Below are positions 2,649-31,989 of a stretch of DNA of 64,000 nucleotides, piece by piece (within the stretch, counting starts at the first letter, position 1; every line of letters begins with the position of its first letter). The notes beneath the pieces were generated by a model. It saw only the letters and a program-made list of their open reading frames with translations, searched no databases and was not told the origin of the DNA. The stretch comes from Guillardia theta CCMP2712. Taxonomy: Eukaryota > Protista > Cryptophyta. The DNA lies in the NCBI RefSeq assembly GCF_000315625.1, contig NW_005434647.1, positions 114,103-178,102 of the forward strand, given 5' to 3'. Made by a program: the position numbers and the translations under genes.

Positions 2649-3443
2649 ATGCAGTTGATGAGCTCTGTGCGGACTGTCCGACCCCGGAGGAGCAACGCGA
2701 CTGCCGCTAGACTCATCTCCTTCGTCCTCTGCGTCGAGTGTTGGCTGGTCAAGCACGACTGTGCTCTGGCCGTAGCCGAGCACGAGCGCCCAACAGTGCG
2801 GGCACATCGGCAGGAGCATGCGCACTCCCACCTTGGCTTCCTAAGCGCCAACGTCAACCTTGCGAGGAGGAAGACGTTCTCGGCGTGTCCTGCCGCCCCG
2901 ATGACGTGTAGCCAAGGGCAGCGCAGGAGGCTGATGAGGATGAATGGGGAAGCCGAGAACGACGGAGTCTGTAACCCCAGGAGCAAGAAGGTTGCGATCA
3001 TCGGGGCTGGAGCCGCAGGCTTGGCTGCCGCCAAGCAGATGCGGCTAGCAGGGCATGAGGTGACGGTCTTCGAACAGACCGGGGAGGTAGGAGGGGTGTG
3101 GCAGTACAGCAATCAGACAGAAGGAGATCCACTGGGGCAGGTGGGGGTAGAGGAGCGCGTGCACTCGTCCATGTACGAGAATCTCCGCACAAACCTCCCG
3201 AGAGAGGTCATGTCTTTCTCCGACTTCGACTTCGACACCTCCTTCGGCGACCCACGTCGCTTCCCCCACCACAGCGCCGTTTTCAACTACCTCGTCGCCT
3301 ACAGCGAGGTCAACGGTCTCAGGGAGCACATCGCCTTCCGGAGAAGGGTCCTTTCCATCGAGCCCTGCGCGAGCCAGCAGGAAGGAAGAGGTTTCCAAGG
3401 GCATTCTTGGTTGTTGAAGCACGCGCCCTCCTCCGCTTCGGAG

Positions 3444-24705: not shown

Positions 24706-26758
24706 TTACTCTCTGTTACCGTAGCGGCTCACCGTTCGTCAAAGTCAAATTTGATTTAAAAATCAGTACGAGGACAATCAGGAGAGTAAATTTATTTCAG
24801 TATTTACAAAGTCATCATCTCGATTCAGCCGCGAGTTCAGAGGCAGTACCCAAATCTTTCAAGAGAGGCCTGAATATTCGAATTTCGGTGCGGCTGATTT
24901 TAGTTTACTATTTCAAGTTAGCAATCCGCGCCTTGAATTTTGAATTAGTTCCGAGGCATGTGCTGACAAAAAGGGGGCACAAAACATATCGGTTCGGTCT
25001 CGGCCACCGGTTGAGATCGGTACCCTGGGTGCCGGGCGCAGCGGCATGACGTACCGTGGGCGTACCGTGCCTACTAGGCTACCCGGATGCCGCAGTACCG
25101 TACCGTTTACGGTGTCAGGGGGCACTGCTCAGATGCCCCCGATGCCAGGCCCGGTGCCCGGCCGTCAAACCGTTGAACGGTGGGACCGTCGGACGGCCGC
25201 AGTGCGGCAGTTCTAGCATTTTTTGTACTTCATCCCGGACCGCCGGTGACCAGTTCACTGCAGGCACGGCGGGGTGGGCCGTGGGTGGGTGGGGTGGGGG
25301 AGAAGAGCTAGTGGGGGCGGTGGGGGTCAGTGAGCTGCGGCAGGGTGGGGGTGCCGCAGTGCCCCGGGTCACCTGGGGTTCATTGGGTCACACCGACGGT
25401 GAATAAAAACTACTGCGACTGTTCCCTAGGACCTTTTCAGCTCTAGTGCCCTATGCTATCGGGAGTACCGAAGATGGTGCCTCCTATGGCCTGAGGGGGT
25501 ACCCCAGTGGTACTCGGTACTGCCAGTGACAGTACTGTACCGTACCAGACTCGAGGACCCCTCCTTACCTGCGCCATTCGGACCCTCCCGTCTCAGGCCT
25601 ACCCCTGGCCTCGAGATCTCGACGGGCATCTTCCGATGGTAGGGCCGTCTCCCTTAGGGCCTGGTCTGAAGTATGAGCCTACCACCCCACCCCCCTTTCA
25701 AGTAAAGTATATCCACCTGCCAAGTTGAACCCCCTTCACTGCCTTGCCCCACCCCACCTTGGTGACTCCGGGATGCCAATAAACCCAATCATACTAGCCA
25801 CCATAGTACCCCTGGTCTCATCCTTGGAAATGCTGAGGATAGTAGGGGTGTGACCCGTCTCTACGGGTCAATGTAGAGCTGCGATGACCCCACCCTCTAC
25901 CGGGGGCCTGGCTGTGCGTACCACCAAGTCTTAGGGAGTATCCTACTCATGTACCACCACTATGAAATCACTACCCTTGATTTCTCACATTGCAGCACCG
26001 GTGTTGGGAGGTGCTCGGTACCCTAGATCAGAGGTGGACCCCCCCTAGAATCTTGAAAGGTCCCCATCTACCCTACCCCTATCCCGCGGAACTTAGGTTC
26101 TGTATCCCGTGCTACCGCGCACTTTCCCTACGCTAGCTATCATCCTAACACTACACTGGTACTACCCCACCCTGATATCTCCTGCAAATGACCCCCCAAA
26201 AGATAGCCTCGGAGAAACCCCCTCACAAACCAACCACCCCACCACAGAACCTCACTTTCCTACACTCGAAGTCCCACCCTCAGGGGTGGGGATGACCCTC
26301 ACACGGTCATGTTGTCTTACTTGTCGGCAGAGCACATGATGCCTGGCATGGTCTTGCGATGCTGCCGCTGTCTGAGCCTTCTCATCTGATTCTGCTGTGT
26401 GCCTTTCCTCTCTTTGATCGCTGCATGACGTTGATGAGCGCGATCTTGTCACCGTGCCGTCCTATCGTTGTGTTGGGAATGGCATGGGCAACATGTGCAA
26501 CGTGAGTGTTGACTTCAGGGCGGCAGCTAGTTGTTTTTCTGGGTGATTTGTCGATGAGAACGTGACCAAGTTAGTTTCCTCATCCCTGCTCTTTCAAGTT
26601 TAGTTGTGGAGGTAATCTCAGTGTTGAGTGAGAAGAGCTCAGAGAGATGCGAGCTCTTGGCGTTGTAAAGTGCTTGTTGTCTCCATCGTCAGTTGAACTT
26701 TGAAGCATTAGAGTTTCGTTGGACTTCGAATCAATCTGAAAGTTACTTTGCAGCTGAA

Positions 26759-28056
26759 ATGGTTTCTGCATTGGATCAAAACGGCCCGCAGTACTTGCAA
26801 AACCCAATCGTTATCGCAGCAGATTGGATTGGGTTCATTGCCTTATTTGGTATCGATGACATGACTTGATCTTGTTATGAAAGCTGAGTTTACGTGTAGG
26901 ATCTTCTCTTGCTGTAGCATACAAACTTGTTACTTTCAAAGGACCAGACCAAGATGATGTCTACTTCTTTGGGTTTGGAAACGAATCCTTGCTTCTTCCG
27001 TTGTTGATCCCTCATCAGATACCGTGAGGAAAAGATGATCTCGGTGTTCGTGAATCTCTTTGCAGCTTTAGCATACGTAAGTATTTAACTTGATTCCTTG
27101 CTCTGCCTCTGATTGTCATTGCTCAGTGGGCAAAATTAGCGTCACATGCCAATGGAGATGTCGGGCCCGCAGCGTCAGTGACAACCTACAAGTATCTGGA
27201 CTACTTGTTCACCTGCCCGCTCCTCACCATCGATCTCTTGTGGTGCCTCAATCTCCCCTACAAGTTCACCTTTGGCGCCATCGTGGCTGTGTGCATCTTG
27301 TGCGCCTTCATGGCCTCGGTCATTCCTCCGCCGGCCCGTTACATGTGGTTCGGCATGGGCATCACCGTCTTCTCTGCAGCATGGTTCAACATCTTGAAGC
27401 TCGTGCGCATGCGCCTCGAGCAGTTTGTGAGCAAAGAGGCGAAGAAGGTCCGTCAGTCCCTCAAGGTTGCCTGCATGACTTACTTCTTCATCTGGCTCGG
27501 ATACCCTACCCTGTGGGTGCTCGGCGACGCTGGCGTGCTCGACTCAGTGGTTTCAGCTTTGTTGCACACGTTCTTAGACGTTTTCTCCAAGTCAATTTAC
27601 GGCTTTGCCCTGCTGCACTTTGTGATGAGAACCGACAAGAGAGAGTTCATCTTCGTGCCTCTGAAGCCTTCGGTTGAGAAGATCGTGGTCGAAGACGACG
27701 AATCAACGAGCTCGCGAGCCGAGTCGACGCGCGCGTCCAAGTCCAAGATCATGATCGGCTCGAGGGTCAAGAAGTTGCGGAGCTCAGCGACTGATGAGCT
27801 ACGACCGAGCGCGACAAACATGAACCCCTGGCTGAACGGGTTGCCGAATGGATTGTCGATGGGAGGAAGCATGGGAAGCATGGGAGGAATGCCCGGCATG
27901 CCCGGAGGAATGGGTGATCACGGACTTGAAGACGTAGAGATGCACAATCAGTCGGCACAGCAGCAGTATCTGGCAACCCAGGAGGAGATCAATCAAGTGA
28001 ATAAGCAGCTCCAAGACCTCTTGATGCGTACTGGAGGAGCGGGTCGCTCGATTTGA
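26759..28056 (+). CDS. Bacteriorhodopsin-like cation channelrhodopsin (cryptophyte BCCR / GtCCR family), 383 aa, 4 exons
   Basis: Exons 26759-26849, 26900-26972, 27019-27076, 27127-28056 (introns 50, 46, 50 nt, all GT-AG) give MVSALDQNGP...ADWIGFIALFGSSLAVAYKL...GYREEK...YKYLDYLFTCPLLTIDLLW...WLGYPTLW...LDVFSKSIYG. Seven TM segments, helix-C D99/T103/D110 (DTD), D225 and retinal-binding K229. Confidence 0.95.
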
Positions 28057-28293
28057 AAGCAAGGATGCTTGTAAGATATATCACCTCGAGGAACCGCATT
28101 GGGTTGTGGCCTGAGCTCCACGTTTTGACGATTTGACTTTGATGGAACCCAGTGTCAGAGAGGGAGAAATGCTCCAATCTGCTCCAAGTTGCCGACAGAT
28201 GTTTCAAGTTTTGTGTTATTTACCATGTGAAGGATTAAATTATATACTCTGTTGCTGCCTGTCATAATTGTGTTCAAACATAGAGGTATAGAC

Positions 28294-28443
28294 GAAGTGT
28301 CAGTGGTGCGGGGTTTGAAATGGTGCAGATCCACCAATTTTGTTCAAAACCGTATCAAGTCTCGTGATGTCAATGCTGCTATGAATATTCTATTGTGCTA
28401 CATGTCTCTACCAGCACGACCAGATTTTCTGAAACGGCCTTGA
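28294..28443 (+). pseudogene. 3' fragment of a Fanzor (eukaryotic TnpB-like RNA-guided nuclease) gene
   Basis: Open frame EVSVVRGLKWCRSTNFVQNRIKSRDVNAAMNILLCYMSLPARPDFLKRP*. It has the RuvC-III signature RDxNAAxNI (28363-28389) preceded by Fanzor1-like VRGLxWC (28306-28326). No RuvC-I/II upstream. Confidence 0.8.
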
Positions 28444-28590
28444 ATCACACATGGGTCTGGTTATACTTCAACCTGTTCTTCATAGAAAGAAAGGATGAAG
28501 TACGAGTCAGACACAAGGAAATATTGGCGTGTGGGTCTTCCATGATCCATAATTTTGTGTCGTTTAGCTGATAGAGGTATAGACTATGAA
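28444..28590 (+). ncRNA. Candidate Fanzor omegaRNA (scaffold plus guide)
   Basis: Lies directly 3' of the Fanzor stop. Imperfect ~24-bp hairpin 28455-28512 (GTCTGG/TCAGAC, TACTTCA/TGAAGTA), second hairpin 28531-28550 (GTGGGTC-ttccat-GATCCAT), long-range GACACAA(28510-16)/TTGTGTC(28555-61) pairing. Boundaries and expression are inferred. Confidence 0.45.
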
Positions 28591-29527
28591 ACTTGTGACT
28601 ATGAAAGCTACTGTCAGTCTTTTACTCAAAGTTAAGTTAAAAATCAGTACGAGGACTCAGCCTCACAGGCGAAAAGACAGCAACAACCAATCCCTATATG
28701 GCCGACTGCTGTCCCCCAAACTACATGTAGGGGTGTAGTTTTAAACGGTAACATTAATATATATTTAAAGTATGATGCTACCACAACTTGAGAGAGACAC
28801 CGGTTAACAGCAAATATAATGGTTATTTTCAATAGAAATTTATAAGCATATAGTCTATATATAATCCTAGGTACTGAAATAAGGAGTTATAATGACCAAC
28901 TCGTACAGTTATTTCTCCATGCGGGGGAGAAGCGCGACAGGATGGCGGGGGGTGTGGGGCAGGGTGAGGAAGGAGACGAGAGGGAGGGCAGGGACAGGAA
29001 GACAATGAGCGATAGTTGAAGGGACGTTGCTGTGGAAAGATTGGAATCCCACGATGGCAGTTTCATCATGGAGGACGAGAGGACGGAGGAGTAAGTGAGT
29101 GATTAACAAGCAGAGGAAGGAATGGCGTGTAGGGAGATTGAGGGGCTGAAGAAGGAAGGACGAGGATGAAAAAGTTAGACACCAACAAACATGCATTGCA
29201 CATAGCTGTGAACCATGACGAAGACTAGCCCAAGGGCGATAGGTCGAGGCCTTGTTGAAGCAGTAGGGGGCTGGCCTTGGTGGAAAGGGAAGGAGTGAAG
29301 GAGGAAGGGGGGGAGGAGGGGAAGGGAGGGAGGGATACATGAGAAAGGGAGGGATACGTTAGCTTGTGATAGAAGACAGAAGAATGTGTGAAATAGCTAA
29401 TTAGACATGTCGGAGCTGACTCCAGCCGTGCATTGGTCTCGCGAGCCCCTCTACTTGCGCTCTCGTTGACGCCTTCTGACGTGCATGCGGTTGTTCAGGA
29501 CTCGATCTGGTTTCGCACCATTGAGAC

Positions 29528-31380: not shown

Positions 31381-31989
31381 TGAAGAGAAGGGCTGGGACG
31401 AGGCAGCGGGGGAAGGGCAAGGGAAGGGGGAAGGGAGAGGAAGCCTCGGTGTTTGTTTTTAAGAAAGGAATTCTTTCATCGTGAGAGATGGGCAGTGCGA
31501 GGGTTGAAATGATGTTGGTTCACCAAATGTTTCATAACTCGCATTGTACCTCGTGACATTAGAGCTGCACTGAACAGAGACAGAAACTTTCATGTGTGGC
31601 CATGGTCACTCACTAGTAAGTTTTCTGCACAACCAATATTCGACATATCGAAGATTTGAATGGTTCAAATCATATTTCAAGGTCTTGATCTTCCTTGACG
31701 TTTCAAGGTTAAGAAAGGAAGACAAGAAAGCTTCTCATGCTGCCTCGAGGTCCTGAGGGAAGAACATGTCCGTGTCTTCAGTCTGATCGCACCCCGTCAC
31801 TCGTTGAGGCAGACGTTGCAAAGAATGTTTGCCGAAGTCACCATGATTGTCATTAGAATATCACCACCATCACAAGTACATCTTCATCCTTCTCGTCATC
31901 ATTACATCAGCATGATCATTACATGTCATCAACACCACCACCGTCATTGACAATGTTATCGTCCTTTCTATAGTTGTTCGTTTCGCTTA

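Follow-up and report, generated by a model that had tools for sequence, protein, structure and literature searches.

A truncated Fanzor1 right end between anchored direct repeats in Guillardia theta: a candidate scar of aborted RNA-guided homing

The locus and its neighbours

The DNA analysed is a 64,000-nt stretch of the Guillardia theta CCMP2712 genome, referred to here as the window. A gene on the + strand with its stop at 28056 encodes a bacteriorhodopsin-like cation channelrhodopsin with a long Gly/Met-rich C-terminal tail, whose nearest relatives of solved structure are cation channelrhodopsin 4 and GtCCR2. From 29528 onward, also on the + strand, lies a gene for a MADS-box (SRF-type) transcription factor, with a poly-Gln tract downstream. 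Between the two genes is the 3' part of a Fanzor1 element, set between the copies of a short direct repeat (Table 1). To its right are two dispersed repeats, one of 36 bp and very high copy number at 28621-28656 (contig depth 3.3e5 vs 60; look-alikes at 24745, 10087, 9933 and 1858) and another of about 50 bp at 28670-28723, present in tens of copies by contig depth.

Table 1. Features of the Fanzor1 remnant and its flanks (window coordinates)
Feature	Position	Strand	Remarks
Left repeat copy: ATAG (putative target/TAM 4-mer) and first 10 nt of the would-be protospacer	28280..28293	+	
Last 50 codons and stop of the Fanzor1 ORF	28291..28443	+	Second half of zinc finger; RuvC-III Asp GAT at 28366-68
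TTT (Phe) where the family has TGT (zinc-finger Cys609)	28339..28341	+	From the assembly; allele absent from DNA-run contigs
First stem loop, predicted omegaRNA scaffold	28455..28512	+	Conserved in all intact-tail members; 4 nt added in the loop of the remnant
Second predicted stem loop	28530..28551	+	Folding of the window and of the intact copy
Element right end	28553..28570	+	Family comparison; the family continues ATA(A), then diverges
Site of 35-nt deletion, with TTT microhomology	28555..28556	+	Third stem loop kept in L001, L004, L008 and the majority of genomic copies
Right repeat copy: ATAG at the family's ATAA position, then first 10 nt of host flank	28571..28584	+	
Putative guide (host flank)	28575..28594	+	Start assumes a 4-mer that is part of the scaffold, as elsewhere in Fanzor1; otherwise 28571
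Second Fanzor1 remnant, of another family and 3 kb away, with exact 12-bp repeat TTAAGAAAGGAA	31459..31720	+	

Identity and boundaries of the remnant

A sequence-only reading of this stretch had pointed to about 50 codons with VRGLKWC-x12-RDVNAAMNI...RPDFL and a stop at 28441-43, and had taken them for the C-terminus of a Fanzor. The frame can be read directly: it is open from 28294 on the + strand and runs EVSVVRGLKWC-x12-SRDVNAAMNI...RPDFLKRP. Its assignment is also borne out. Searching 1.84 billion representative proteins with the 49-aa peptide gave 16 proteins, the best being a 598-aa protein of Hanusia phi (E 1.6e-10, 62%). Hanusia, the source of this closest named match, is the sister genus of Guillardia. 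A profile built from the 16 relatives matched the solved structures of SpuFz1 (E 4e-25), PpFz1 (3e-23) and GtFz1 (1e-15), and a structural model of the Hanusia relative aligns with SpuFz1 at a TM score of 0.71-0.75. The C-terminal zinc finger, with one Cys replaced by Phe, and the RuvC-III 'RD' motif of the remnant are homologous to those of Fanzor1. The 63-aa window peptide had no matches in Pfam or the PDB because it is too short, and no Rfam model matched the remnant.

A much closer relative is the intact copy on metagenome contig L001, which shares 97.7% nucleotide identity with 28291-28555 and encodes a 642-aa protein, P0023, whose residues 593-642 are 98% identical to the remnant peptide. 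P0023 is a full family member with the complete RuvC D-E-D triad (D401, E563 and D618). The remnant has the third RuvC Asp only; RuvC-I D401 and RuvC-II E563 are absent, and the protein is dead, as had been proposed. The remnant is the 3' 280 bp (28291-28570, a smaller extent than the 28263-28600 first suggested) of a Fanzor1 element, young and some 2.5 kb long, and holds 50 of that element's 642 codons. The left 2.2 kb of the element, left end included, is absent.

Other members of the family are L003, L004, L005 and L008. The right end of the family reads ...GTGTCGTTTAGCT(A/G) and is followed by ATAA in L001, L004, L005, L008 and one RNA contig, beyond which the sequences diverge; at the ATAA position the window has ATAG. 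No family copies were found in viral and prokaryotic collections, and a search of JGI metagenomes returned one already known locus and one distant match. Membership of the GtFz1 family was considered and rejected: the C-terminus and tail are unlike the published GtFz1 locus, and P0023 alone matched no PDB sequence at E<=1. P0023 is an uncharacterised intact Fanzor1 whose right end is defined and whose TAM is predicted to be of the ATAA type.

DNA-run contigs over the remnant have a depth of 1005-1142, against about 60 for unique flank, which by this rough measure corresponds to roughly 17-19 copies. The left junction has a depth of about 60 and is single-copy; it was also seen in an independent 2021 DNA run, in a contig covering 27600-28320 with 0 differences. 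The right junction and the private changes of the remnant are taken from the genome assembly.

In L001, a 42-bp block occurs three times at 693-1098, upstream of the intact Fanzor, at spacings of 121 and 88 bp, and a candidate left end is at ATAA 693-696; the element carries no transposase gene, and a clear terminal inverted repeat is likewise absent. The flank of the L001 insertion (3186-3215) recurs in a 2023 aquatic metagenome run (X19), so at least two wild samples contain the intact copy. In another family, L010 holds at 1-2276 a complete Fanzor1 element of 670 aa with short inverted ends CCTTTAAACG, TTAT/TTA flanks and no transposase.

Tail structure, decay and the question of a guide

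The tail of intact members has a predicted fold (z about -4.1) of three hairpins and, enclosing them, a terminal stem in which the ATA from the end 4-mer takes part. A terminal stem taking in end bases has likewise been reported for insect-virus Fanzor1 RNAs. Of the pairings proposed for the remnant from its letters, the hairpin at 28455-28512 is strongly favoured (z -3.9; none of 200 shuffles as good), and the one placed at 28531-28550 was recovered with its ends shifted by one base, at a pair probability of 0.89-0.95 in the window and 0.67-0.97 in the intact copy. The third, GACACAA/TTGTGTC, fails: its probability is 0.57 without the first hairpin, 0.00-0.04 once that hairpin is included, and 0.0 in the intact copy. 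Among copies, the tail is conserved up to ATA(A) and the sequences then diverge, giving the structured non-coding right end and variable flank of a Fanzor1. Covariation support is slight, with one compensatory change among few, closely related sequences.

The 3' half of the scaffold differs among copies by whole hairpins: the tail of L008 has one extra hairpin, the third hairpin is absent from that of L005, and L009, which ends in ATCA, has lost most of its tail. This internal deletion made L009 unusable for covariation.

Three changes in 280 bp are private to the remnant: Cys609 to Phe, a 4-nt insertion in the first loop (about 28484-88), and a loss of 35 nt at 28555/28556 that removes the third hairpin. 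The deletion is present in no contig, and contigs drop rare variants. With these changes the tail of the remnant folds with a z of -2.6, against about -4.1 for the intact tail, and the predicted probability of the terminal stem goes from 0.98 in the intact copy, a value that depends on the segment folded, to 0.01. The proposal of a structured omegaRNA-like 3' end therefore stands in part: a structured right end lies at the place expected for an omegaRNA, and a guide would be read from the flank, but with 35 nt missing the 3' end is not intact, and the suggestion that the portion kept is precisely the module that makes the guide finds no support.

These observations bear on whether the remnant works as a guide-only 'ghost', supplying intact Fanzors in trans. 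Ghost loci and guides in trans are already published for SpuFz1, whose ghost omegaRNAs work (Saito et al. 2023, PMC10432273). Here the first two stem loops are retained, near-identical copies of the family exist in the genome, and read-through is possible from the expressed rhodopsin gene, which is on the same strand and ends 235 bp before the remnant. Moreover, the loss of a hairpin is not proof of lost function, because Xu et al. (2024) suggest that scaffold past the first stem loop is not critical and may be dispensable. Against this stand the missing 35-nt hairpin and the terminal stem that is no longer predicted, the three private changes in so short a sequence, and the missing left end, since published ghosts retain both ends (PMC10432273).

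Expression also argues against a working ghost. Contigs of the rhodopsin gene from two presumed RNA runs of different studies stop some 30 bases short of the 14-bp repeat, at 28251 and 28250, whereas the DNA contig continues to 28320, and in these two studies no presumed-RNA contig crosses the left junction of the remnant. Contigs prove neither ends nor absence, and short RNAs lie outside the sampled material, so the only conclusion is that the junction is not crossed by any abundant transcript. Where RNA contigs cover the remnant, they have the alleles and flanks of other copies; the missing private alleles were dropped as evidence, as the DNA contigs are also without them. Finally, the sole match of the would-be guide within the window is the left junction of its own locus, over 10 nt, so the only target in trans would be a vacant allele of the remnant site, and the idea of a useful guide in trans finds no support there. 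We regard a functional ghost as improbable. The remnant is probably an inert, decayed, 5'-truncated copy of a Fanzor1 right end, and as a single locus it is an ordinary relic. Its value is in the anchored duplication around it, repeated in a second family of the same window.

Direct repeats around the two remnants

The remnant is flanked by an exact 14-bp direct repeat, ATAGAGGTATAGAC, whose first bases are exactly the end 4-mer and whose remaining 10 nt lie in the unique flank. The last three bases of the repeat (GAC) are common to the element at the left junction and constitute a microhomology. The chance that the 11 other bases match within 20 positions is about 1e-5, and any 14-mer has a copy 100-500 bp upstream at 0.11% of window positions. 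The full-length L001 element has no long repeat (best match 8/14), as judged from one full-length copy with its left flank.

The second remnant (31471-31708) is older and likewise 5'-truncated, with an in-frame stop. Its right end matches the inverted end of full-length L010, and its repeat starts at TTAA directly after that right end. The fold of its tail does not stand out from shuffles (z -0.2 to -1.1). The geometry was examined directly at two loci, of different families.

Duplications of this kind have a precedent in the Fanzor1 elements CRe-1/2/3 of Chlamydomonas reinhardtii, 5'-truncated copies of which are accompanied by duplications of 7-19 bp (Bao and Jurka 2013, PMC3627910). The likeness is close, since there too the copies are 5'-truncated and 3'-intact, the duplication lies beside a fixed tetranucleotide, and complete copies are without a long duplication; the present remnants likewise combine 5' truncation and a kept right terminus with a tetranucleotide-tied duplication, of 14 bp in the first and 12 bp in the second. 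Two differences are that in CRe-1/2/3 a TTTT lies upstream of the duplication in a Helitron2 carrier, whereas here the 4-mer opens the repeat, and that here the scar is also found in a second family, one with inverted ends. An explanation for the variable duplications that flank truncated Fanzor copies has been lacking since 2013 (PMC3627910, PMC10288648); Craig (2023, PMC10288648) calls the cause of those in Chlamydomonas unknown and tentatively invokes Fanzor.

Aborted homing as a proposed source of the scar

The reading that we favour, at a probability of about 0.55, is that the remnant is the product of aborted RNA-guided homing at a vacant allele cut by Fanzor. A slightly stronger case can be made for the broader claim that the anchored repeats are footprints of Fanzor cutting in vivo in any form. 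The identity, boundaries and decay of the remnant and the geometry of its repeat are observed, and the steps of homing are inferred. A full element formerly at the ATAG site would have given an omegaRNA carrying the right-hand flank as its guide. A vacant allele, either an excised chromatid or an element-free homologue, would be cut inside the protospacer, at least 10 bases to the right of ATAG. The right broken end, whose homology to the filled allele would reach its very end, could invade, while the left arm would end in a non-matching tail. Copying leftwards would take in the start of the protospacer, ATAG and 280 bp of the element before synthesis halted, and the 3-nt GAC microhomology would serve to join the new strand to the left arm. 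The order so produced would be 4-mer, guide seed, 3' part of the element, 4-mer and guide. A break inside the right flank is needed, because repair of an edge break or of a gap left after excision would duplicate the 4-mer only. Such scars would accumulate, because the product cannot excise, having no left end, and offers only a 10-nt guide match.

The argument for aborted homing is that the repeat starts at the family's end 4-mer and enters the unique flank by 10 nt, that a second family 3 kb away shares the layout, and that full-length L001 is without a long repeat. It also draws on published work. GtFz1 cuts inside the flank, 14-17 nt from the TAM (PMC10432273), and in Chlamydomonas the repeats mark Fanzor-carrying truncated copies and are near-absent from Fanzor-less ones, being found in 1/200 Helitron-1N1 copies (PMC3627910). 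One-sided copying would further predict an excess of 3' ends, as seen in Chlamydomonas. Trimming of the broken end has to be assumed, because the 10 nt of flank in the repeat (8 nt in the second remnant) fall short of 14-17 nt, a distance that comes from GtFz1, a member of another family. Further points against homing are that the remnant has ATAG in place of the family's customary ATAA, with GtFz1 accepting no change in its TAM, and that no empty allele was found, the metagenome run having no contig across the site.

A different origin for the layout is one-ended transposition, the Bao and Jurka / Craig model, in which a putative Helitron/HUH-like transposase copies the element into a new site from its right end, and a duplication of variable length results from a staggered cut of the second strand, perhaps made by Fanzor. 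CRe-1/2/3 share the architecture (PMC3627910), Craig (2023) proposes HUH and Fanzor cutting combined, and L001 has no terminal inverted repeat matching its right end. However, no guide for a new site exists before insertion, and the family of the second remnant (L010), with inverted ends and TTAA/TTAT flanks, is not Helitron-like and yet shows the same scar. One scar layout in two families, one of them with inverted ends, points to the nuclease rather than to Helitron machinery. We regard one-ended transposition as unlikely.

Insertion could also have been templated by RNA, with a transcript reverse-transcribed at a nick, either by a LINE in trans or primed at the guide after a Fanzor cut. The combination of 5' truncation, a duplication of 7-20 bp and junction microhomology is a hallmark of LINE-type reverse transcription too, which counts against homing, and the truncation, 12-14 bp duplications and 3-nt microhomology seen here are typical of target-primed reverse transcription. 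Sequence of the family was also found in a presumed RNA run. On the other hand, there is no poly(A) and no donor flank, the copy stops exactly at the DNA end of the element, and the duplications of Bao and Jurka reach 443 bp (PMC3627910). Templating by RNA appears a little less probable still than one-ended transposition. A LINE-processed retrocopy would carry a 3' tail of poly(A) or simple repeat, whereas here the element end runs directly into the 14-bp repeat. In another version, resembling prime editing, the scar would be written from RNA, the cut end of the target strand priming reverse transcription on the bound guide RNA, through the scaffold and into the ORF. This guide-primed writing fits both loci as well as DNA-templated repair does; we rate it slightly below even the functional ghost.

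Lastly, the scar might owe nothing to Fanzor, a random nearby break having captured element DNA during repair, or the layout being due to chance. Ordinary end joining is known to yield templated insertions with microhomology. The repeat is nevertheless anchored to the exact end of the element in both Fanzor remnants of the window. A Fanzor-independent origin is very improbable.

Relation to known systems

Aborted homing at the G. theta site has its nearest counterpart in the TnpB homing of IS200/IS605 and IS607 (PMC13565253), in which a vacant site is cut and the element is copied back from the filled allele, as is proposed here. That process has been demonstrated in bacteria, where it normally brings back the complete element; the remnant would be an incomplete product, for which homing is read from geometry. 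A 2026 review of restorative homing contains no mention of 'truncat', 'ghost' or 'CRe-1', and no report reading such duplications as aborted homing was found in the literature covered, most subscription journals being outside it. Elements reduced to a Fanzor and a right end have been reported from a green-algal giant virus.

Ghost Spu-1 of Spizellomyces punctatus resembles the remnant in having an omegaRNA-type right end without a working Fanzor ORF. Its 134 conserved loci have kept the inverted ends on both sides, and the scaffold has been tested (Saito et al. 2023, PMC10432273), whereas the remnant is a single truncated copy with no left end, a deletion in its scaffold and an RNA that is predicted only. 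To SpuFz1, PpFz1 and GtFz1 it is related through the profile matches, the Hanusia model and the D-E-D triad of its intact relative, its family being distinct from that of the characterised GtFz1.

The natural role of Fanzor nucleases has been stated to be unknown (PMC10432273). If the anchored repeats are scars of cutting followed by abortive repair, genomes would hold a countable record of eukaryotic Fanzor homing, and each scar would give its family's TAM and an approximate cut position, no experiment being needed. Because the anchored duplication is found in two families, a host role of Fanzor would become testable by a genome census.

One further repeat was noted beside the remnant. A 10-bp direct repeat, GACTATGAAA, with a 15-bp spacing, lies at 28582-28606, inside the would-be protospacer and near the expected cut; it could be a second repair scar or could have arisen by chance.
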